From sequence record NC_041878.1: a DNA stretch of 64,000 nucleotides, one strand, 5' to 3'. Of the stretch, positions 2,525-60,772 are shown in pieces (within the stretch, counting starts at the first letter, position 1; each line of letters opens with the position of its first letter). The position numbers and the translations under genes are program-made. The notes beneath the pieces are model-generated. The model ran no database searches. It was not told the origin of the DNA and saw only the letters and a list, made by a program, of their open reading frames with translations.

Positions 2525-3667
2525 ATGGCAATTGACGACGTTAACAATGGTTTCGAAGAAGTTAAGCCACAGCGTAAAACTGGAACTCGTAAGCGTAAAC
2601 CTGCGGCAACTAAAGCAGAACCAGTAACTATCGAACAAGAAGAATTCGCACAGAGCGAAAAACAGTTACCATCTCTGCGTGATGCAAAAGGTACTTCAAT
2701 GGAACTGACTGTAGCGAATATCCATACTTTGGGTTCCGATGCTGGTCAGAACATTGGTAAACTTTCTGAAGAAATTCTTTCTAAAGTTAAAGTTGCTGAT
2801 ACTGGTGAACTCGGTGATGGTATTTCTAATATTCTGACTTTGACTCGTAAAGTCGATATTACCCGCCTGGGTGAACAACGTAATGGTCTGCTTTCTCGTG
2901 TTTGGAATATCTTTGGTGATACCAAACAGAAAGTACTGGATCAGTTCGAAACCAGTAAAGACCAAATCGAAAAGATCACTGGCACTCTCAGTACTGGTAT
3001 TGATCGTATGCGTGGTGAAGCAGTATGGCTTGAAAATGCATATGATGCGAACATTGAATATCTGCATGAACTGGAAGATATTCTGGTAAACGTTGATGAA
3101 GTTAAAATCATTGAAGATCAGAAGTTGGCTAAACTCATGGCTGATCCTGAAACTCCAATGAACGTACTGGATGACCAGCGTATGCTTACCGATGCACTGG
3201 ATAAGCAAGCCGACAAACTTCGCCGTCTGGTACAACTGGCAAAACTGACCGCACCGCAGATTGCGTCAATGCGTAAAGTTAACATGAACACCGTTGAGAA
3301 GTTTGAATCTCTCAACACCGTTGTTATCCCAGCGTGGAAAAACAACATGAGTCTTTCTCTGATTAGTTTGCAGCAGAAGAAAGATAACGAATTGTCGAAC
3401 ATGATCGACAATGAAACAAACCGTCTGTTGAAAGACAACGCGAAAACTGTTGCACAGAACATGAAAGACGCAGCAGCGGCGAACCAACGTGGGGTAGTGG
3501 ATTTGAGTACTCTTCAGTCTATCCAGAACGATATGTTGAATGGTATCAAAGAAACCATTCGCATTGAAGAAGCTGGACGCCAAGAGCGTAAACAAGCTGC
3601 AATCGAAATGCAGAAAATGGATCAAAATCTGAAAATCGCACTTCGCGATATTGCTCAGAAAAAATAA
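2525..3667 (+). CDS. telA: toxic anion (tellurite) resistance protein TelA family
   Basis: 380 aa; LLSRVWNIFG...LDQFET and SLNTVVIPAWKNNM segments typical of TelA. Confidence 0.85.
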   Translation: MAIDDVNNGFEEVKPQRKTGTRKRKPAATKAEPVTIEQEEFAQSEKQLPSLRDAKGTSMELTVANIHTLGSDAGQNIGKLSEEILSKVKVADTGELGDGISNILTLTRKVDITRLGEQRNGLLSRVWNIFGDTKQKVLDQFETSKDQIEKITGTLSTGIDRMRGEAVWLENAYDANIEYLHELEDILVNVDEVKIIEDQKLAKLMADPETPMNVLDDQRMLTDALDKQADKLRRLVQLAKLTAPQIASMRKVNMNTVEKFESLNTVVIPAWKNNMSLSLISLQQKKDNELSNMIDNETNRLLKDNAKTVAQNMKDAAAANQRGVVDLSTLQSIQNDMLNGIKETIRIEEAGRQERKQAAIEMQKMDQNLKIALRDIAQKK

Positions 3668-3687
3668 TCCAAAAAGCAGTACTACAA

Positions 3688-3714
3688 AAGCTCCCAACAC
3701 TTGGGGGCTTTTTT
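3688..3714 (+). terminator. intrinsic terminator
   Basis: AGCTCCCAA-cac-TTGGGGGCT TTTTT. Confidence 0.8.
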
Positions 3715-3733
3715 CATATGGAGAAATAAAAAT

Positions 3734-4066
3734 ATGGATAACCTATACACTCAAGAACTACTAACTAAGCTATCAGAAATCATTTCAGAAAATGATATGG
3801 ATGATGATAAAGAAGGTAAGTACAATGATGAAGGTATCAAGTACATCACAGTTGTAGAAGGTGATTGGACAGACGAAGGTAAGTACTCTTTCTGTGACTG
3901 GACTTTCTTCTTCCCTGAACTAAATGTATATGTCTATTGCTCACAATCTCGTAGTGGTTCTTACTATAGCGATTACTACTATGACGACCCTGATTTTAGC
4001 TTTGTAGAACCATACACCGAAACGGTTGTAGTTACAAATTACCGTACTGTTAAGGTGACTGCATAA
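3734..4066 (+). CDS. hypothetical protein
   Basis: SD GGAG; start moved to MDNLY. Confidence 0.8.
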   Translation: MDNLYTQELLTKLSEIISENDMDDDKEGKYNDEGIKYITVVEGDWTDEGKYSFCDWTFFFPELNVYVYCSQSRSGSYYSDYYYDDPDFSFVEPYTETVVVTNYRTVKVTA

Positions 4067-4740
4067 TGAATCTTTTTTCTTTAGACATTGAAACACTTGG
4101 TACTCCAGAGAACTCAGGTTATGGAATCGTAATTCCGAACTATGCTATTGTTAAAATCCCTGAAGTACTAACACATGAATTAGAATGGATTTATGTTCAA
4201 CTACCAATTCAAGATCAGATTGATGTAGGTCTTAAAATGGATGCAAGTACTATGAACTTCTGGTTCGATACTTGTGCACAGGAATTCCCTCTAGCATTGT
4301 GTGAAATGCAGCAATCATTTAAACTTAAAGCACCAACGGTTCTACACTCAGATGGTGATACTCATGAATCCACCAATATTCCACTAGTCGTTAAGAATTT
4401 CTTACATGGACAGGAAGAACCAAAGTTCAATACTAAAGTCTTTGGAAATGGTTGTAACTTTGATTGTAGTATTCTACAAGAGAACCATCGAGTAATGTTC
4501 GGTGACGGTAATTTGTGGCAATATGCTGCACCAAACAATGTTCGTTCACTAAGACTTCTTCTTTCTAAAGAAGATGAAGAATTAATGAAAGATACGATTG
4601 ATCCATATCTTAGCCGGTTCTGTGATTCTATTGATGAAGTGGGTTGGATGTTTGATCTTTGTTTACATAATCCTCTGTTCGATGCGGCTAAAGAAGCGTT
4701 GTTCGTAACTTATATTATGAACTTAAAAAAATCAGCTTGA
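4066..4740 (+). CDS. DEDDh 3'-5' exo(ribo)nuclease
   Basis: SLDIETLG, GNGCNFD and HNPLFDA motifs. Confidence 0.75.
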   Translation: MNLFSLDIETLGTPENSGYGIVIPNYAIVKIPEVLTHELEWIYVQLPIQDQIDVGLKMDASTMNFWFDTCAQEFPLALCEMQQSFKLKAPTVLHSDGDTHESTNIPLVVKNFLHGQEEPKFNTKVFGNGCNFDCSILQENHRVMFGDGNLWQYAAPNNVRSLRLLLSKEDEELMKDTIDPYLSRFCDSIDEVGWMFDLCLHNPLFDAAKEALFVTYIMNLKKSA

Positions 4741-28547: not shown

Positions 28548-28671
28548 CGGGAATTGGTGTAATGGCAGCACAACGTTATAACATAGATTCTTGTATATAG
28601 GAATTTCACAGCAACCAATACAATTGCATAGGGAGCCGTGAGATGAGGTTCGATTCCTTGATTCCCGACTA
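28548..28671 (+). ncRNA. tRNA-Pro-like (AGG loop) with 50-nt ACAGCAA insert in anticodon stem
   Basis: Acceptor CGGGAAT/ATTCCCG-A, D arm, T arm GGTTCGATTCC; insert 28576-28625. Confidence 0.6.
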
Positions 28672-41994: not shown

Positions 41995-42068
41995 GCCTTT
42001 GTAGCTCAGCGGTAGAGCGGGGATCTCTAAAATCCTTTGTCGTGGGTTCGAATCCCTCCATCGGCACA
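41995..42068 (+). tRNA. tRNA with CTA anticodon (amber suppressor candidate), Phe-like body
   Basis: GGGAT-CTCTAAA-ATCCT; canonical D arm; 2 acceptor and 1 T-stem mismatches. Confidence 0.7.
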
Positions 42069-42371: not shown

Positions 42372-42483
42372 GCATAAATGACGGAATTGGTAAACGTAGA
42401 GTCTGACAATAGCGAAAGCGACGATAGGACTTCGGGAGTAGCCGTGAGGTTCCCTTGTAGGTTCGAATCCTGCTTTATGCACC
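42372..42483 (+). ncRNA. class II tRNA-like RNA with anticodon loop replaced by ~22-nt insert
   Basis: GCATAAA/TTTATGC acceptor, D and T arms intact; GC-GAAA-GC in place of anticodon. Confidence 0.6.
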
Positions 42484-49423: not shown

Positions 49424-49548
49424 GGCGAGTTAGCTCAGTGGTAGAGCACGTATGAAACCCAGGATTCCTGTACTTGAATCCCGCAGCAACTATACTCTCA
49501 AGCCTTTTAAGCTCGTGGTCATTGGTTCGAATCCAATACTCGCCACCA
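49424..49548 (+). tRNA. tRNA-Lys(TTT) with 50-nt insert between nt 28 and 29
   Basis: Removing 49451-49500 leaves a 75-nt cloverleaf: CGAGC-CTTTTAA-GCTCG, ACCA. Confidence 0.75.
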
Positions 49549-51203: not shown

Positions 51204-51788
51204 ATGCATACGTTTGATGTTTGTGAAACGGATTTAGAACTACTAGGTGAAGGTTCTTCGCGTAGAGTTTATGGTTTAGATCCAGAATGGGCTATTAAAA
51301 AGCCAATTAATTACGGCGGCATTTGGCAAAACAAAAATGAAATAAAAGTTTTTAAAAAGTACAAGAACAGTACTTTACCGTTGTGTCCAATTGATCTTGA
51401 ACGTTCAACATCGCAATCTATTATTATGCGTAGAGTGAAGCCATTAGATGATATGCAATTAAGCATGTTTGATGGTGCAGTAATGGATTATGTTGATGAA
51501 TGTCATATAAAATATATTAGTACTGAACAGAAGCGTAACTTCATAAAAGAAATGATTGAAAGCAACTATGATCCTAAAGTAGTTGAATTCGTAAAGAAAC
51601 TTGCACGTTTCAAAAGTGAAGATATTCATCATTTCTTTTATGATGTTTGCTCTTTTAATTGTGGTATGTTAAATGATCAAATTGTAATTATTGATTATGG
51701 TTATCCTGATGAAGATTACCATGATGATCATTTTTATACCAGTACTAAGGAATATGAAAGATATTTTGAATGTTCTTTGACAGCTTAA
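51204..51788 (+). CDS. minimal protein-kinase-like protein
   Basis: LGEGSSRRVY, AIKK, NKNE, IIMRRV, D...FNCG, VIIDYG. Confidence 0.7.
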   Translation: MHTFDVCETDLELLGEGSSRRVYGLDPEWAIKKPINYGGIWQNKNEIKVFKKYKNSTLPLCPIDLERSTSQSIIMRRVKPLDDMQLSMFDGAVMDYVDECHIKYISTEQKRNFIKEMIESNYDPKVVEFVKKLARFKSEDIHHFFYDVCSFNCGMLNDQIVIIDYGYPDEDYHDDHFYTSTKEYERYFECSLTA

Positions 51789-51806
51789 TTAAAAAAGAGT
51801 AATATT

Positions 51807-52313
51807 ATGTCTGATACAATGTTTCCTTATATTGGTAAAGGTTGTTCAAGGATGGTGTACGCGATTAATGATGATATAGTCATTAAGGTTGCACGATACT
51901 TAGATAGTTCATCTGGCACTACATTAGCCAAATGGGGCATAGATCAGTGTAAAACAGAATTAGATACGTACTTAAAGTACGGAGAAAAGATGCCATTCTG
52001 TAAAATTTACGTTGACATGTGCACAGATGAGCGTATAATAATGGAACGGGTCACACCACTGTCTGACCTTCCGAGTGAAATTACAGATTTTGATGAAGTG
52101 ACTGACTTGATTTCACGTTTAGAATTTGAACGTGAGAACGAGTCTGGATATTTAGAGTCGTTACATCCTGCGATGCAGCGGTTTGCTGAAAAAGTTTTAA
52201 AAAGTGGCTTGACACGTCAGGAAATACGAGATATACTCTCTGACGTTGAGTACAGTAATATGGGTATTAAAAACGGGGAACTTTATATTTTAGACTTTGG
52301 AATATACGGCTAA
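51807..52313 (+). CDS. minimal protein-kinase-like protein (tandem paralog)
   Basis: IGKGCSRMVY, VIKVA, CKTE, IIMERV, DVEYSNMG, ILDFG. Confidence 0.75.
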   Translation: MSDTMFPYIGKGCSRMVYAINDDIVIKVARYLDSSSGTTLAKWGIDQCKTELDTYLKYGEKMPFCKIYVDMCTDERIIMERVTPLSDLPSEITDFDEVTDLISRLEFERENESGYLESLHPAMQRFAEKVLKSGLTRQEIRDILSDVEYSNMGIKNGELYILDFGIYG

Positions 52314-52330
52314 AATATTTAAAAAAGTCC

Positions 52331-52359
52331 TTGACTCTGGTTTGAAAGTTTGATACTAT
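52331..52359 (+). promoter_or_regulatory. sigma70-type promoter
   Basis: TTGACT-17-TACTAT. Confidence 0.75.
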
Positions 52360-52461
52360 AATCACATCGACGGATGTAAAGCGTAAAAGTTGGTATATAA
52401 TTATAAAATAAAGATTATAATTAGTACTTTTTGTAAAAATAAAATATAAGGTTTATAAAGA

Positions 52462-52677
52462 ATGGCTAAGAATGTTATTACTGATATTGGCGAAGTTGAA
52501 CGTACTGTGAACTACATCCAGTTCCAGATCTCTCAGGCAGATGCAATGCTTGCTCCTTTCGCTAACAGCGATAAATCAAAGATCTGCTATGCACATCTTC
52601 TGGATTGGAAGAAGTCTTTGCAGAACGAACTGCATGAGATCCGTAAGGCTCAGCAGAAAGCACGTTACCACAAGTAA
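52462..52677 (+). CDS. hypothetical protein
   Basis: High-expression codon bias. Confidence 0.75.
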   Translation: MAKNVITDIGEVERTVNYIQFQISQADAMLAPFANSDKSKICYAHLLDWKKSLQNELHEIRKAQQKARYHK

Positions 52678-52740
52678 TGTGAAGCCATGCCGCCAACATT
52701 GTTGGCGGTACTTTTAAGTTAGAAACAAAGGAACTGCAAA

Positions 52741-52983
52741 ATGAAAAGTGCAACTGACCTTAAAAACTTGCATAAACGTATTCAACAGTTGAAAGGGCAG
52801 CAGAAGTTACTTAATGTAGAATATGCTGAACTGGATGCTAAAGAAAACAAAACCAAAGATGAAACGAAACATCTTGCGTCTATTCGCAATTTGCAGTGGT
52901 CTTTGATTTATCAAATTCGTGGGCTGGAATTAACGTTCAAAGAACTGAAAGACCAGGTTATTCAAGAAATTATTAACTCGTAA
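52741..52983 (+). CDS. coiled-coil hypothetical protein
   Basis: SD AAGGA. Confidence 0.7.
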   Translation: MKSATDLKNLHKRIQQLKGQQKLLNVEYAELDAKENKTKDETKHLASIRNLQWSLIYQIRGLELTFKELKDQVIQEIINS

Positions 52984-52995
52984 CTGGAGATTATA

Positions 52996-53466
52996 ATGGG
53001 TACAATTATACTGTACTGTGTTTTGGGAAGTCTAGGTTTATTCATTCTGTACATGTTGGTGATCACTTCATCTTTGGGTACTGAACGTTTTAAAGTACCG
53101 CAATTCTTAATGTCATCTTTGACGTACAGCGAAGAAGCAACAACTAAGTTGAATCTTCTGATTGATAAGTACGAAGCTGGTCTTCTGAACATTCGCCGTA
53201 CTGATAAAACATTAATTTTTACTGATGTTGAAACTGGTCAAAAAGCTGGTGAAATCTGGATTCAGAACAAGTACTATTCGTATGGTAATCTGCATCGTTA
53301 CGGTGCACAAGATGACAAACAATGGTCTTGTAATAAACCAAACATCAAAACGTTCAAGCGTATTATCAAACTTGAACAAACTCTAGAAAAAACTTCTCAA
53401 GAGCAATCTGCGGTTAGTACTCCTAAACCAGCAGCTAAAGCTGGTGAAGAAGTTGTTCTAGACTAA
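52996..53466 (+). CDS. membrane-anchored hypothetical protein
   Basis: SD GGAG; N-terminal TM. Confidence 0.75.
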   Translation: MGTIILYCVLGSLGLFILYMLVITSSLGTERFKVPQFLMSSLTYSEEATTKLNLLIDKYEAGLLNIRRTDKTLIFTDVETGQKAGEIWIQNKYYSYGNLHRYGAQDDKQWSCNKPNIKTFKRIIKLEQTLEKTSQEQSAVSTPKPAAKAGEEVVLD

Positions 53467-53484
53467 GGGCGAAAGCCCTTTTTT
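53466..53484 (+). terminator. intrinsic terminator
   Basis: AGGGC-gaaa-GCCCT TTTTT. Confidence 0.8.
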
Positions 53485-53520
53485 AATTGAGATGTTTTTC
53501 AGTACTTTATGAAAAATAAA

Positions 53521-53549
53521 TGAAACGATAGAAATTTTTGTGGTATAAT
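53521..53549 (+). promoter_or_regulatory. class-B promoter
   Basis: TGAAAC-17-TATAAT before permuted tRNA mimic. Confidence 0.8.
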
Positions 53550-53566
53550 ATAGTACATAAGGCAAC

Positions 53567-53687
53567 GGAATCTTACAGCAAAAATAATTAATTTTTGATG
53601 AAAACAAAACGATGGCGGTTCGAATCCCCACCCACGATTTTGCCTTATTTTAAGTGGGAGCATGGTGCTGGATAAACAAGAGATTCC
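53567..53687 (+). ncRNA. circularly permuted tRNA mimic (ACAGCAA family)
   Basis: GGAATC-TTACAGCAA, T arm, CCCAC/GTGGG closed acceptor, D-like hairpin, GATTCC. Confidence 0.7.
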
Positions 53688-53709
53688 AGATTTTAATTTA
53701 GAAAATTTT

Positions 53710-53738
53710 TGAAACGAATCAAAAATTTGTGGTATAAT
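53710..53738 (+). promoter_or_regulatory. class-B promoter
   Basis: TGAAAC-17-TATAAT. Confidence 0.8.
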
Positions 53739-53755
53739 AAACGTATTAGCAACAC

Positions 53756-53873
53756 GAAATCTTACAGCAAACAATATCTTATATTTTTTATGCGAAAAAA
53801 ACGATGTGGTTCGAATCCACAACAACCATGTTGCTATGTTGGTTGTGCATGGGGCTAGAAAACAAAAGATTTC
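53756..53873 (+). ncRNA. circularly permuted tRNA mimic (ACAGCAA family)
   Basis: GAAATCTT-ACAGCAA; TGTGG-TTCGAAT-CCACA; ACAACC/GGTTGT; AAGATTTC. Confidence 0.75.
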
Positions 53874-53907
53874 AGTTTTTTTAATTAAGACAAATAGGAC
53901 AACGGCA

Positions 53908-54054
53908 ATGACCGCAGAAGAAAATTTAGAAATCCTTCGTAAAATTCTTGACGGAATTCGTGATGGCGATTTGAATGAAGTAATGTCCGAAATAGGTTTT
54001 GAAGTATCCAAAAGTACAGATAAAAGTACTGAATGGATAAACAAAAACCAATAA
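53908..54054 (+). CDS. small hypothetical protein
   Basis: SD AGGA; MTAEENLEIL. Confidence 0.6.
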   Translation: MTAEENLEILRKILDGIRDGDLNEVMSEIGFEVSKSTDKSTEWINKNQ

Positions 54055-54060
54055 CAATCA

Positions 54061-54133
54061 GTTCCCATCGTCTAGTGGTAGGACTTTTGACTTTCTATCA
54101 AAAAACCTCGGTTCGAATCCGGGTGGGAACGCA
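54061..54133 (+). tRNA. tRNA-Glu(TTC)
   Basis: TTTGA-CTTTCTA-TCAAA, T arm. Confidence 0.9.
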
Positions 54134-54142
54134 AAGATATTT

Positions 54143-54231
54143 GGGGGAATAGTCCGTAGTTGGTAGCGGGGCAGACTGTAAATCTGCTACACGAAAGTGT
54201 TCGGGTGGTTCGACTCCATCTTCCCTCACCA
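54143..54231 (+). tRNA. tRNA-Tyr(GTA)
   Basis: GCAGA-CTGTAAA-TCTGC, long variable arm, CCA. Confidence 0.95.
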
Positions 54232-54232
54232 A

Positions 54233-54338
54233 AAGAATCGCACAGCAAACATCAATCTTATATATTTCATTTGGCGAAAACACCTTCGGTTCGATTCCGA
54301 TTTACCACTGGATGTGGGGATAGAAAAACACGATTCTT
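54233..54338 (+). ncRNA. ACAGCAA family RNA with T arm and short closed acceptor
   Basis: AAGAATCG-CACAGCAA...TCGG-TTCGATT-CCGA...CGATTCTT. Confidence 0.65.
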
Positions 54339-54376
54339 GTTTCTAATTTAGCGTGAGTTAACAGAATTTAGCACAC

Positions 54377-54533
54377 GGATTCAGACAGCAAACATAAAAT
54401 CTTAAAAATCATATCATATAACGAGATTGTCTACTCGGACGTAAAACTCCCTTCGTAGTCACTTGGCAACTAGGGATATATAAATTAGTTGTATCGAACA
54501 GTGCTAAGGTTTTTGTTCGATTACATTGAATCC
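54377..54533 (+). ncRNA. ACAGCAA family RNA with inverted closing helix
   Basis: GGATTCA-GACAGCAA...TGAATCC. Confidence 0.55.
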
Positions 54534-54563
54534 AGTAATCAAAGTACTTCATTGTACTTTTAT

Positions 54564-54654
54564 GGAAGATTGGCAGAGCGGTTTAATGCACATGTCTTGA
54601 AAACATGCGGGGGTTAATAGCCCTCCCTGGGTTCGAATCCCAGGTCTTCCACCA
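54564..54654 (+). tRNA. tRNA-Ser(TGA)
   Basis: CATGT-CTTGAAA-ACATG, long variable arm, CCA. Confidence 0.95.
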
Positions 54655-54660
54655 AATTTT

Positions 54661-54781
54661 GGGAAAGTAGCTCAGTTGGTAGAGCACGTATAGACGATTC
54701 TTGTAGTTGAATCTTACAGCAACCATACAATTGCATATATGAAAGCACGGTGTCATTGGTTCGAATCCAGTCTTTCCCACA
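54661..54781 (+). ncRNA. tRNA (Phe-like body) with 43-nt ACAGCAA insert and 10-nt loop
   Basis: GGGAAAG/CTTTCCC, canonical D and T arms; CG[54689-54731]TGC-ATATATGAAA-GCACG. Confidence 0.65.
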
Positions 54782-54845
54782 TAGAATCTAACAGCAAACC
54801 TTATTTTATCAAACCTAACCTTTGAAGCGAAAATAATAGATTCTA
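54782..54845 (+). ncRNA. minimal ACAGCAA family RNA
   Basis: TAGAATCTA-ACAGCAA...TAGATTCTA. Confidence 0.6.
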
Positions 54846-54870
54846 GTACTTTTAATTTGAGAAATACATA

Positions 54871-55272
54871 TTGGAAAATGATGAAATTGAAAATATGTTA
54901 GTTGACGCATTGCGAAAAATCGACACTTCATCATATGATTTTAAATCTTCCAAAGAGATTTCGAATTCAGAATTCGGTTCTGACGGCAAACGGCGATACT
55001 TGAAACTCTACTTTCAAAAAAGTTCAGGTGAAGGTATTATAGAATTCATTTATCATTCGATAAAAGATACGCTACGATTCAGAATTCAATATATTGATAA
55101 CTCTGATGAAGATGAAGATTTTGATGGAACTAGCATATCGTATAAGATACCAAGAACTGAGGAACAATATTTTCAGTACGATACAATTCAGGACAACATG
55201 TTTAGTTTAGAATTCTATATTTTACTAGAAAAAACAATGTCAGAATTGACACTACTATGGTATAGTAGATGA
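54871..55272 (+). CDS. hypothetical protein, EExxFQxxT family
   Basis: TEEQYFQYDTIQD. Confidence 0.7.
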   Translation: MENDEIENMLVDALRKIDTSSYDFKSSKEISNSEFGSDGKRRYLKLYFQKSSGEGIIEFIYHSIKDTLRFRIQYIDNSDEDEDFDGTSISYKIPRTEEQYFQYDTIQDNMFSLEFYILLEKTMSELTLLWYSR

Positions 55273-55295
55273 TTTAATCACCACAAGGAAATGAA

Positions 55296-55505
55296 ATGTT
55301 TTACGATTATTATTATAAAGTAGATGGTGCACTTCGTCGTCATACTTCTGCGGAAGAACTAAATGATGAACAAGTAAGCAACATCTTCGGTGCACAAAAA
55401 CGTGTAGTACTTCTTGAGCCAGTAGTGTTTGAACGCGAAGTTCAGGAAGATGAAAAAACTAAAACTGTTAAAGAACATGTAGGGTTTATCGGTTACGTAG
55501 AATAA
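55296..55505 (+). CDS. hypothetical protein
   Basis: SD AAGGA. Confidence 0.7.
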   Translation: MFYDYYYKVDGALRRHTSAEELNDEQVSNIFGAQKRVVLLEPVVFEREVQEDEKTKTVKEHVGFIGYVE

Positions 55506-55532
55506 TAAATGTAACGTACTGATAAATAAAAT

Positions 55533-55577
55533 AGAATCCATCCAGCATTGACCGGAAAATAATATATTGGATTCTTG
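55533..55577 (+). ncRNA. minimal ACAGCAA family variant
   Basis: AGAATCCA-TCCAGCA...TGGATTCT-TG. Confidence 0.45.
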
Positions 55578-55600
55578 TATTAATTGAGATGAGATATATT

Positions 55601-55825
55601 ATGGATAATCAACACAAACAAATTAAAGGATACCGAGATTTATCTCAGAAAGAGATTAATCAAATGAATGCATTAAAAGATATTGCTAATAAAGTTGGCG
55701 ATATTATTGAAGCACTACAAGATGACCCTGACGTTGATCAACGATGGCTTGCAATTGCGAAGACTGACCTTCAAAAAGGTTTCATGTCAGCAGTTCGAAG
55801 CGTTGCTAAACCGGACTCGTTTTAA
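55601..55825 (+). CDS. acb2: anti-CBASS cyclic-nucleotide sponge, Acb2 family
   Basis: MDNQHKQIKGYRDLSQKEI..MN...RWLAIAKTDLQKGFM...AKPDSF matches Acb2/Vs.4 as recalled. Confidence 0.85.
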   Translation: MDNQHKQIKGYRDLSQKEINQMNALKDIANKVGDIIEALQDDPDVDQRWLAIAKTDLQKGFMSAVRSVAKPDSF

Positions 55826-56223
55826 TGGACAAATATGATCGTTTAGATTCAATAGGTGAAGAACACCTGTTGAGCTTGATGAAAGTACAAAATCCAAGAA
55901 CAATGATAGGATTATCTGACCAGATAGTGTTTAATGAAAATGATTCATTCTCACTTATTACTGGAGAGGTAATCCTTTTTCATTTGGATGATGGTAGTAA
56001 CACATTTAGTGTAATGATACTACCAAACAATACATTCAAAGTACTGTACTATGTAACAGATGATGAAGATGATGGTAACTACATATTCACTTTCAACAAT
56101 GTTCCATATGATATTACTGAAGAATGGCATTTTCAAAAGAGTACACAAAAACGTTTACCATTCACTTATGAATTTCATGAGAAGATGAAAGAATTCGTTG
56201 AGTACTGTTTGAAGTTAATTTAA
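55825..56223 (+). CDS. hypothetical protein, EExxFQxxT family
   Basis: TEEWHFQKSTQK. Confidence 0.7.
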   Translation: MDKYDRLDSIGEEHLLSLMKVQNPRTMIGLSDQIVFNENDSFSLITGEVILFHLDDGSNTFSVMILPNNTFKVLYYVTDDEDDGNYIFTFNNVPYDITEEWHFQKSTQKRLPFTYEFHEKMKEFVEYCLKLI

Positions 56224-56310: not shown

Positions 56311-56448
56311 GGAATCTAACAGCAATTAAAAATGTTAACTAAAAAATAGCTGCCGCAAGGCTTGTAGGTTCAAGTCCTACAAATTATGTCTTCATGAATA
56401 ATGATGGTGAAAATGGTAAACACGGCTATTAACTAAACAATGGATTCC
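56311..56448 (+). ncRNA. circularly permuted class II (Leu-like) tRNA mimic, ACAGCAA family
   Basis: GGAATC-TAACAGCAA; ATAGC; CC-GCAA-GG variable arm; TGTAGG-TTCAAGT-CCTACA; D arm GGTGAAAATGGTAAACAC; GCTAT; GGATTCC. Confidence 0.8.
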
Positions 56449-56567: not shown

Positions 56568-56712
56568 TGGAATTTGCCAGCAATTAACTTATTCAACGCT
56601 GCGGGTCGCAGGTTCGAGTCCTGCCAGATATGAAATGATGCTTCGTAAGATAAATCAGATTAGTACTGTAGCTCAGTTGGGAGAGCAGCAGCCCACACAA
56701 AGATGAATTCCA
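56568..56712 (+). ncRNA. circularly permuted tRNA mimic, ACAGCAA family
   Basis: TGGAATT-TGCCAGCAA; GCTGC; GCAGG-TTCGAGT-CCTGC; CAG/CTG; TAGCTCAGTTGGGAGAGC; GCAGC; GAATTCCA. Confidence 0.85.
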
Positions 56713-58687: not shown

Positions 58688-58753
58688 TGGAATCTAGCAG
58701 CAACCATAAAATGAAATCAACTGTTAATTGAAAACCTCAAAAAATGGATTCCA
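58688..58753 (+). ncRNA. minimal ACAGCAA family RNA carrying Asn-type anticodon hairpin
   Basis: TGGAATC-TAGCAGCAA...TCAA-CTGTTAA-TTGA...GGATTCCA. Confidence 0.65.
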
Positions 58754-59320: not shown

Positions 59321-59387
59321 TAGAATCTAACAGCAAACACATTTAAACATATATTTTTGGGATATAAAACGTTAAAAACGGATTCTA
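59321..59387 (+). ncRNA. minimal ACAGCAA family RNA
   Basis: TAGAATC-TAACAGCAA...TATAT-TTTTGGG-ATATA...GATTCTA. Confidence 0.6.
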
Positions 59388-59417
59388 GTCTTATTAAAAG
59401 CAATCGAGAATATTTAC

Positions 59418-59653: not shown

Positions 59654-59709
59654 TAGAATCTAACAGCAATTAAAACTCATTTGGATAATATGAAAACCGA
59701 TAGATTCTA
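59654..59709 (+). ncRNA. minimal ACAGCAA family RNA (near-identical to 60718-60772)
   Basis: TAGAATCTAACAGCAATTAAAACTCATTTGGATAATATGAAAA...TAGATTCTA. Confidence 0.65.
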
Positions 59710-60717: not shown

Positions 60718-60772
60718 TAGAATCTAACAGCAATTAAACTCATTTGGATAATATGAAAAACAATAGATTCTA
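60718..60772 (+). ncRNA. minimal ACAGCAA family RNA
   Basis: Direct repeat of 59654-59709. Confidence 0.65.

Follow-up and report, generated by a model that had tools for sequence, protein, structure and literature searches.

What are the two RNAs apparently encoded at positions 53521-53873 of a 64,000-nucleotide stretch of sequence record NC_041878.1 (hereafter the window), where the parts of a tRNA follow each other in permuted order, and how do they relate to the tRNA genes around them? The window belongs to Pectobacterium phage vB_PcaM_CBB (KU574722; hereafter CBB), a Rak2-like jumbo myovirus of 378 kb, which it matches with 100% identity at record positions ~248001-312000. It carries 21 tRNA genes called by ARAGORN and three long Rfam tRNA matches, all on the + strand with small open reading frames (ORFs) between them; at the locus itself GenBank shows no RNA, just the minus-strand hypothetical coding sequence CBB_449. 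We describe two neighbouring paralogues, E1 (53557-53687) and E2 (53747-53873), with RNAs of ~125-135 nt. Their termini are the halves of a cassette, made of a helix P1, the motif ACAGCAA and an A-rich strand, that marks inserts within tRNA genes of the same genome. We read E1 and E2 as permuted, cassette-ended tRNA mimics that would become nuclease-resistant by cassette-directed processing, possibly circularisation, and act as decoys, and we put the probability of this whole reading at roughly one half.

Structure, promoters and conservation of E1 and E2

Aligned with each other, E1 and E2 show 75% column identity, and the locus is made up of the following parts:

53465-53480 (+): intrinsic-terminator-like hairpin and T run just before the E1 promoter; ends the upstream gene CBB_448 and insulates E1
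53521-53549 (+): E1 promoter, with TGAAACG (53521-53527, -35-like), an 11-nt spacer and the extended -10 TGTGGTATAAT (53539-53549)
53557-53565 (+): E1 5' leader ATAAGGCAA, the pseudoknot 5' strand, pairing with 53640-53648
53567-53573 (+): E1 P1a, GGAATCT, the 5' strand of the terminal cassette helix, pairing with 53681-53687
53575-53581 (+): E1 cassette motif ACAGCAA
53593-53609 (+): E1 anticodon-arm-like hairpin TTTTG-ATGAAAA-CAAAA, a 5-bp stem and a 7-nt loop with U33, GAA and A37
53613-53630 (+): E1 T arm with T loop TTCGAAT and one bulged C in CBB and phage GAP32; present in the minimum-free-energy (MFE) fold
53631-53658 (+): E1 acceptor-like stem, 5 bp CCCAC/GTGGG (53631-53635 with 53654-53658), closed by an 18-nt loop
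53640-53648 (+): E1 pseudoknot 3' strand TTGCCTTAT, inside the acceptor-closing loop
53660-53668 (+): E1 D-like hairpin GCA-TGG-TGC, 3 bp with GG in the loop
53670-53687 (+): E1 A-rich strand and P1b, GGA followed by TAAACAAG, then AGATTCC (53681-53687)
53710-53738 (+): E2 promoter, with TGAAACG (53710-53716), an 11-nt spacer and the extended -10 TGTGGTATAAT (53728-53738)
53747-53754 (+): E2 leader TAGCAACA, the pseudoknot 5' strand, pairing with TGTTGCTA at 53829-53836
53756-53770 (+): E2 P1a GAAATCTT (53756-53763, pairing with 53866-53873), then the motif ACAGCAA
53785-53801 (+): E2 anticodon-arm-like hairpin TTTTT-ATGCGAA-AAAAA
53805-53821 (+): E2 T arm TGTGG-TTCGAAT-CCACA
53822-53846 (+): E2 acceptor-like stem, 7 bp ACAACCA/TGGTTGT (53822-53828 with 53840-53846), closed by an 11-nt loop; present in the MFE fold
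53847-53873 (+): E2 D-like hairpin GCATGGGGC (53847-53855), A-rich strand TAGAAAACAA and P1b AAGATTTC (53866-53873)

A first-pass annotation of this stretch had proposed two permuted tRNA mimics with T arms, loop-closed acceptor stems and short hairpins with GG in the loop, and all of these are present. The order of parts in both elements, anticodon arm, 4-nt variable loop, T arm, acceptor 3' strand, loop, acceptor 5' strand and miniature D hairpin, is indeed a circular permutation of a tRNA, the 3' half preceding the 5' half and the complementary acceptor strands being joined by a linker. To this description we add helix P1, the anticodon-arm-like hairpin, the leader:loop pseudoknot, the paralogy of E1 and E2, and the cassette halves at their ends. 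The termini are placed where the D arm meets the anticodon stem; the anticodon-arm stem of E1 starts exactly 10 nt past the 7-nt motif, and the acceptor-closing loop of E2 contains the pseudoknot 3' strand (53829-53836). Both RNAs are predicted to adopt a tRNA-like L shape, which P1 and the pseudoknot would hold together.

The promoters that had been claimed at 53521 and 53710 are there, both reading TGAAACG-N11-TGTGGTATAAT. A generic sigma-70 scan scored them 10/12 and 11/12, with TG extensions, the number of generic sites (2) being not above the shuffle expectation (2.8) in this AT-rich stretch. The exact 11-mer TGTGGTATAAT is enriched, with 12 matches against 2.5 expected, and the composite TGAAAC-N11-TGTGGTATAAT occurs nine times in the window, every time on the + strand. 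As five of the nine composites end 11-22 nt before ordinary tRNA genes (Ser, Leu, Arg, Asn and Pro), we take this to be the tRNA-type promoter of the phage; the class is the "divergent RpoD-like" promoter of CBB and GAP32 (PMC5259590). Transcription from these promoters would be by the host RNA polymerase, with predicted starts near 53555-53557 for E1 and near 53745 for E2, judged from promoter spacing only. The start thus falls ~10-12 nt upstream of GGAATC and GAAATC, not a few bases as had been suggested, and the leader bases belong to the structure: with the usual 7-nt spacing from the -10, the RNA 5' end lies 0-2 nt before the pseudoknot 5' strand, so that this strand stands at the very 5' end of the RNA.

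That each element has a promoter of its own holds for CBB but not for Eneladusvirus (BF and the Yersinia phage), where another tRNA-like element stands first behind the E2 promoter and E2 comes immediately after it. In Serratia phage BF (L006:2725-2860) this extra element, ~110 nt between the E2-type promoter and E2, contains a T arm and a GATTCTAG-containing hairpin and is without ACAGCAA. A T run behind the E2 P1 is not kept in orthologues and a terminator scan found nothing there, and we dropped the idea that P1 and the T run act as an intrinsic terminator.

Orthologues of E1 and E2 were found in 10 related genomes or contigs, from Mimasvirus (GAP32, XbC2 and Kaldavass), Eneladusvirus (BF, the pEa_SNUABM phages and Yersinia fHe-Yen9-03/04), and IMG/VR and metagenome contigs, with a mean column identity of 90% for E1 and 80% for E2; the flanking DNA, unlike the elements, was unalignable at the blastn threshold used. 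In Eneladusvirus, megablast aligned only query 1015-1240, covering E1 and part of the E2 promoter, at 88-89% identity, and not the flanks. A metagenome scan for E1 gave four further copies only, all near-identical. In this small sample for covariation, the proportion of paired cells was 95.6% in the E1 alignment and 88.5% in the E2 alignment, against 41-54% and 41-62%, respectively, with the partners slid by 1-3 columns.

The changes are compensatory in several helices. In E2, the middle pair of the T stem is G-C, C-G or U-A and the fourth acceptor pair G-C, A-U or U-A across orthologues, and in Eneladusvirus the pseudoknot is formed by the leader AAAGCAAC/AAA(A)GCAAC with GTTGCTTT(T). In E1, the T arm covaries from G-C to A-U. 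At the ninth pair of the E1 pseudoknot, CBB, BF and the Yersinia phage have A-U; XbC2, Kaldavass and contig L060 have G-C; and contig L095 has U-A. The anticodon-arm stem of E1 shows as its sole changes A to G opposite U, with pairing kept. That of E2 is TTTTTC/GAAAAA in the Eneladusvirus group, where the loop also differs, being the 7-nt CTGCTAT in two IMG/VR contigs (L125 and L133) and the 8-nt CTTGCATA in BF and the Yersinia phage. The D-like hairpin of E1 is weak, its third pair being broken in four of eight sequences.

The comparison bears on two other explanations. A protein-coding region might be suggested by the GenBank hypothetical protein CBB_449 on the minus strand or by a 189-aa ORF at 53499-54068; it is refuted, as the ORF is split into 40-87-aa pieces in different frames in XbC2, BF and GAP32, the indels between orthologues are not multiples of three, and GAP32 has a 576-bp + strand gene between E1 and E2. 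No conserved ORF was found on either strand of the locus among the orthologues. The elements could also be non-functional debris from recombination of tandem insert-bearing tRNA genes: tandem duplication and loss of the outer halves would give exactly the E1/E2 gene order, and the region is rich in odd tRNA-like fragments. We hold this to be highly improbable given that E1 keeps 90% identity over two genera between flanks that do not align at the blastn threshold used and that the promoter-to-structure spacing is kept. Together with the compensatory changes, the tRNA-type promoters and the upstream terminator, this conservation across two phage genera upholds the first-pass view that these are RNA genes and not tRNA debris.

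A cassette shared with tRNA inserts and spacers

The cassette consists of helix P1, flanked 3' by NN-ACAGCAA and 5' by an A-rich strand. The string ATCNNACAGCAA (GAATC-NN-ACAGCAA) has 16 matches with at most one mismatch, against 5.5 expected, on the + strand at 49.4-60.8 kb of the window, and its nine exact copies are all on the + strand at 53.5-60.7 kb. Each free copy of the cassette has a complementary arm 45-150 nt downstream, the shortest copies measuring 43-65 nt, and the arms differ between copies in a compensatory manner (GGATTCA/TGAATCC, AAGAATCG/CGATTCTT and TAGAATCTA/TAGATTCTA). A covariance model built from 40 minimal copies gave matches only on the + strand of the window, at 41.3-60.8 kb; the nine with E<0.2 all lie at 53.5-60.8 kb, E1, E2 and a third element, E3, being partial matches. 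An IMG/VR scan with a 14-mer returned mostly chance matches, yet it exposed the cassette in other lineages, in unrelated phage contigs of 38-401 kb. All 14 cassette loci checked by ARAGORN are inside tRNA clusters and on the tRNA strand, and cassette spacers often end 5-8 nt before a tRNA 5' end or start 2-3 nt past a tRNA. No Rfam family covers E1, E2 or the cassette.

Within tRNA genes, and in a further permuted gene, the cassette was found at these places:

49424-49545 (+): tRNA-Lys(UUU) in which the cassette follows position 28 as a hairpin insert of 50 nt; corresponds to E1 and E2 in unpermuted form
28548-28667 (+): unannotated insert-bearing tRNA with loop ATAGGGA (Pro-like, anticodon AGG), insert after position 29
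54661-54779 (+): insert-bearing tRNA-like gene whose 10-nt loop contains GAA; a minimal cassette comes after it at 54782-54845
56569-56711 (+): permuted tRNA gene of a second kind, in which the D arm is complete; after tRNA-Ile and cassette-flanked

Taking 50 nt after position 28 out of 49424-49545 leaves a perfect tRNA-Lys(UUU) anticodon arm, CGAGC-CTTTTAA-GCTCG. The insert reads TA-TGAAACCCA, GGATTC-loop-GAATCC and CG-CAGCAAC plus 10 nt, which is the cassette with its P1 closed by a loop. A scripted deletion test covered 14 insert-bearing genes, from CBB, GAP32, XbC2, Kaldavass, BF and IMG/VR contigs together with four tRNAs of Vibrio phage D479, and in 11 of them a single deletion of 42-51 nt brought back a 5-bp stem with a 7-nt loop. 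The best-paired site was after position 28 in nine of these 11 (after 29 in CBB 28548), and the insert starts with TA in those nine. Its end falls 10 nt past the motif C[AC]GCA[AC]N in eight of the nine and in CBB 28548, and 11 nt past it in D479_4. The P1 hairpin of the inserts covaries between phages, from GGATTC/GAATCC to AAATTAC/GTAATTT. We looked for an insert-less close orthologue of the tRNA-Lys at 49424 and found none, only insert-bearing copies and a new one in D479.

The strand before P1b, TAAAC after GGA in E1 and TAGAAAAC after GGC in E2, matches the insert 5' end, TAGAAAC after G. Because their ends are cassette halves, with the 10-nt spacing and this A-rich strand match, E1 and E2 are best described as circular permutations of insert-bearing tRNAs, relative to which the opening lies within the P1 loop and the closure at the acceptor end.

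In CBB, the acceptor stem of the second permuted gene, 56569-56711, is disrupted by a ~35-nt insertion. It is perfect in the GAP32 orthologue (L091:113-232), in which the D arm is full, TTCG closes a 7-bp acceptor and the fold z is -3.0, and which ARAGORN calls as a tRNA in standard mode once it is re-permuted in silico.

Some annotations at insert-bearing genes are at variance with these structures. The gene at 49424-49545 is labelled tRNA-Phe in GenBank and its orthologues tRNA-Lys, tRNA-OTHER or tRNA-Undet, and it is missed by ARAGORN. The one at 28548-28667 is missed by ARAGORN and by the Rfam gathering scan; a D479 tRNA (L148:2681-2804) has the same loop. The annotated tRNA-Ser(AGA) at 54661-54779, with the insert taken out, has an anticodon arm with the 10-nt loop ATATATGAAA, and an insert-less positional homologue in BF and the Yersinia phage likewise has a 10-nt loop, ATGCGAAAAC; it is probably not a decoding tRNA. 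Vibrio phage D479 (L148, OZ195776) carries at 2681-4115 four tRNA genes of 116-124 nt with homologous inserts, Pro-like, Glu UUC, Asp-like and Asn/Lys-like, where the motif varies to CCGCAAC or CCGCACAC. Two other tRNA loci lie elsewhere in the window, one with the anticodon CTA at 41995-42067 (amber suppressor type; tRNA-Pyl in ARAGORN) and a 110-nt Rfam tRNA match at 42372-42481, right after tRNA-Leu, with a long internal insertion that is without the ACAGCAA cassette.

Free-standing copies of the cassette, with and without cargo, are these:

58688-58753, 59321-59390, 59654-59709 and 60718-60772 (+): four minimal cassettes; 59654-59709 ends 6 nt before tRNA-Gln
54233-54338 (+): E3, a cassette-flanked T-arm element right behind tRNA-Tyr; a paralogue without the D-like hairpin
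54368-54533 (+): E4, a structured RNA of ~165 nt with the same cassette ends and leader:loop pairing of TTAGCAC (54368-54374) with GTGCTAA (54501-54507)

E4 is kept with covariation in XbC2 and Kaldavass, and carries cargo unlike a tRNA. In several minimal cassettes, the cargo is a hairpin of 4-5 bp whose 7-nt loop is identical or near-identical to tRNA anticodon loops, CTGTTAA of tRNA-Asn or CTTTTAA/CTTTTAC of tRNA-Lys (58688-58753, L002:3588-3649, L003:4135-4193, L129:4306-4372 and L111:4573-4640); these may be mimics of anticodon stem-loops. After tRNA-Ile, 56311-56448 is a cassette-flanked RNA with a GCAA hairpin and a T arm, and a degenerate cassette (CAGCATT variant) lies at 55533-55575, just upstream of CBB_453. 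In an unrelated large phage, the minus strand of the 171.6-kb IMG/VR contig L074 (reverse-complement position 4630) encodes the top half of a permuted tRNA, in the order P1a, ACAGCAAA, T arm, 8-bp acceptor closed by TCT, full D arm and P1b; being without an anticodon arm, it shows a topology like that of the Y RNA relative YrlA on a P1/ACAGCAA cassette. In three cassette-bearing contigs (L085:1837-1907, L117:2467-2536 and L024:1127-1198), ARAGORN reports tRNAs with two-base "anticodons" (tt) and shortened loops.

Targeted full-text searches of the literature on introns in phage tRNAs, on permuted tRNAs and on circular RNAs turned up no account of the cassette. It and its three topologies (insert, spacer and permuted gene) appear to be undescribed.

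Comparison with known permuted and tRNA-like RNAs

We ran Rfam on the whole window at gathering thresholds and on 53400-55000 at E<=10, and E1 and E2 gave only chance matches (e.g., Dicty Class I RNA). Neither is called by ARAGORN or by the Rfam tRNA model (RF00005).

The closest topological parallel is YrlA (RF02553), whose core mimics a tRNA and of which a version with a 7-bp acceptor is cut by RNase P in M. smegmatis (PMC4201824). Like YrlA, the elements have a T arm, a loop-closed acceptor stem and a D arm in this order and ends paired in an anticodon-side helix; YrlA-like RNAs are also found in phages, and the M. smegmatis acceptor has the length of that in E2. On such a model, the terminal helix would bind a Ro60/Rsr ring and the tRNA-like module would recruit an effector. 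The kinship with YrlA that had been put forward for testing with its covariance model was not borne out. RF02553 (gathering 69 bits) gives no match on E1 or E2 at E<=10, its sole match in 53400-55000 being one of 18.6 bits on the T arm of tRNA-Ser, and the Ro-helix motif GNCGAAN0-1G (from PMC4201824) is not found in 53553-53886. Among the ten flanking ORFs (51204-56223), no TROVE or RNA-related Pfam domain was detected, the only Pfam match being Acb2/Tad1, and no TROVE product is annotated near the locus in six related phages. Unlike YrlA, E1 and E2 keep an anticodon arm, have the leader:loop pseudoknot, and end in a helix that belongs to the cassette they have in common with tRNA inserts. We disfavour this explanation as exceedingly improbable. 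As mimics with closed acceptor stems, E1 and E2 are of a kind already known, and the variant is new.

Could the elements instead be permuted genes for decoding tRNAs, maturing as in Cyanidioschyzon, by way of a circular intermediate that RNase P and 3' processing would open in the acceptor loop? The permuted tRNAs of Cyanidioschyzon merolae have a bulge-helix-bulge that is cut by the splicing endonuclease, and their products decode. E1 and E2 resemble them, as well as the split or multi-intron tRNAs of archaea, in that the 3' half precedes the 5' half, the two are joined via the acceptor ends, the termini are halves of the genome's intron motif, and a tandem-duplication origin is expected. The canonical 7-nt loops with U33 and A37 (AUGAAAA and AUGCGAA), the 7-bp acceptor of E2 stacked on its 5-bp T stem, and the sister locus at 56569-56711, of which the GAP32 orthologue is a full permuted tRNA, also speak for decoding. 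E1 and E2 differ from the Cyanidioschyzon genes in having P1 and ACAGCAA, in the bacterial host, and in bodies too reduced to decode. After re-permutation, ARAGORN calls no tRNA in E1, and for E2 it needs its relaxed mitochondrial mode to call one (61-64 nt, anticodon GCG). Only 3 bp and a 3-nt loop are left of the D arm, the E1 acceptor has just 5 bp, the anticodon stems are all A-U, the E2 loop sequence differs between genera, and a canonical tRNA-Phe(GAA) is present. As there is no free CCA end and the D arm is stunted, E1 and E2 as they stand cannot decode, and we regard a decoding role as very unlikely.

Other known systems fit less of the structure. Two-piece tmRNA has a permuted order and a tRNA-like domain with a reduced D region, whereas E1 and E2 are without a conserved tag frame, G3:U70 or a free CCA end. 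A permuted tmRNA was rejected because the Rfam tmRNA_permuted model did not match E1 or E2 and the acceptor pairs in question are G-C or U-A, and a tag ORF from the GCA of ACAGCAA because its frame is unconserved, with 1-nt indels between copies. T4 species 1 and 2 (rnaC and rnaD) are likewise small stable RNAs in a tRNA cluster, of a distantly related myovirus, and rnaC has a T arm; they are unpermuted and without a dedicated promoter. Homology to them was rejected, as their sequences are without the P1/ACAGCAA cassette, rnaD having just a loose CACAGCAGAAAC. Hammerhead-like cores, boxA-like antitermination and integron attC-like sites were also dropped, the defining bases or pairings being absent from the sequences.

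For the inserts, the nearest description is that of Lak megaphage tRNAs, which have short, highly conserved "enigmatic" introns with no known splicing mechanism (PMC6784885). Both are short inserts in phage tRNAs, a likeness by description only; the Lak introns are from Prevotella phages, for which no cassette and no permuted or free-standing copies are described. A group I intron, with a core of ~200 nt or more, was rejected for inserts of 42-51 nt; Rfam gave no Intron_gpI match in 53400-55000 at E<=10.

Candidate processing and role

Independent inserts at one site and with fixed borders, in Lys-, Pro-, Glu- and Asn-like tRNAs of distant phages, point to the behaviour of a removable, mobile intron. 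On our reading, the cassette would be recognised by an activity that excises it and joins the ends, with one cut 10 nt 3' of the motif and the other immediately ahead of a UA. In E1 this activity would join 53672 to 53593 and in E2 53855 to 53782, giving covalently closed RNAs of 80 and 74 nt. The leader:loop pairing could hold the 5' half-cassette on the body until joining, and for a phage RNA ligase, of which CBB encodes two, CBB_83 and CBB_181 (PMC5259590), a nick within the anticodon stem would be a fitting substrate. Judged from the sequence features, we consider such cutting and joining with closed E1/E2 products possible, with the odds leaning somewhat against it.

Alternatively, E1 and E2 may be linear mimics that are never excised or joined, the cassette being an end-clamp or processing punctuation that might, e.g., define ends after host RNase cleavage and shield them from exonucleases, and the tRNA inserts being retained arms of non-decoding variants. 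P1 and the pseudoknot do fix both ends, near-cargoless minimal cassettes occupy the space between tRNAs, beginning 3 nt behind one and ending 5-8 nt ahead of the following one, and canonical tRNA-Lys, tRNA-Phe and tRNA-Glu genes exist alongside the insert-bearing ones: CBB has tRNA-Phe(GAA) and tRNA-Lys(UUU) at record positions 312637-312710 and 313823-313895, and D479 has tRNA-Glu and tRNA-Lys 3-4 kb downstream of its insert-bearing genes. Against this stand the fixed 10-nt distance from motif to exon and the conserved UA border, which look like cleavage sites, and the recurrence of independent inserts at the same structural site in different tRNAs. We judge the linear alternative unlikely, though well short of negligible. 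Even without cassette-directed excision or joining, these two pseudoknotted tRNA mimics constitute a new class.

Several observations weigh against our main reading of E1 and E2. The start site and every processing step are deduced from sequence, and the cassette-cutting endonuclease stays hypothetical. P1 and the acceptor stem of E1 are invariant among orthologues, which makes covariation silent on both there, and the double changes seen in eight of the nine P1 pairs across the 40 copies are a partly circular test, since these copies were chosen by requiring complementary arms. The MFE stability of the elements is no better than that of shuffles (z = -0.05 to -1.4). The E2 pseudoknot and acceptor stem may alternate, because 8 bp within an 11-nt loop are sterically hard to combine with a 7-bp stem. 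The insert-bearing genes at 54661 and on contig L095 yield no canonical arm after deletion, and since canonical Lys and Phe genes in CBB and Glu and Lys genes in D479 exist, the insert-bearing tRNAs are extra copies that need no splicing to be of use. No self-splicing intron or small ribozyme was matched in 53400-55000 with Rfam at E<=10. An archaeal-type bulge-helix-bulge intron was rejected by inspection, with no two 3-nt bulges and 4-bp helix at the insert borders: a helix junction with no bulge marks the 5' border, and the 3' border comes behind a single-stranded tail or helix end. Finally, minimal cassettes with almost no cargo are unexplained by a pure splicing model.

As to a role, phage tRNAs are known to counter bacterial defences that cleave tRNAs (PMC13096335). 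Closed E1 and E2 would be stable mimics titrating a tRNA-binding factor, most plausibly a host tRNA-targeting defence nuclease; without excision, the mimic would be linear, its two ends clamped by P1 and the pseudoknot, and would have the same role. We offer the decoy function tentatively and think it rather doubtful. Inside the same array of tRNAs and small RNAs, CBB_453 (55601-55825) has an Acb2/Tad1 hairpin domain (Pfam PF24729, E = 1.4e-19) and is likely, by this domain, an anti-CBASS/anti-Thoeris sponge.

The locus unites tRNA inserts, free spacers beside tRNAs and two conserved, separately promoted permuted mimics in one sequence family, and several of these RNA genes are mis-annotated in or missing from GenBank records. 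The short "enigmatic" tRNA introns of phages, so far unexplained, become testable, as exact predictions follow for the borders after position 28, the 10-nt ruler and the back-join coordinates. More broadly, large phages might have a system that is not of the group I type, excising a cassette of 42-51 nt, mostly behind anticodon-stem position 28 as set by the 10-nt ruler, with a phage RNA ligase sealing the nick, from which E1 and E2 would emerge as circular counter-defence decoys. We consider this speculative and unlikely; if true, tRNA splicing that depends on a protein or a small RNA would be seen for the first time in the bacterial world, as would naturally back-spliced tRNA mimics. If the cassette does direct excision and joining, phages would have a pathway of tRNA splicing and circularisation parallel to the archaeal and eukaryal one.

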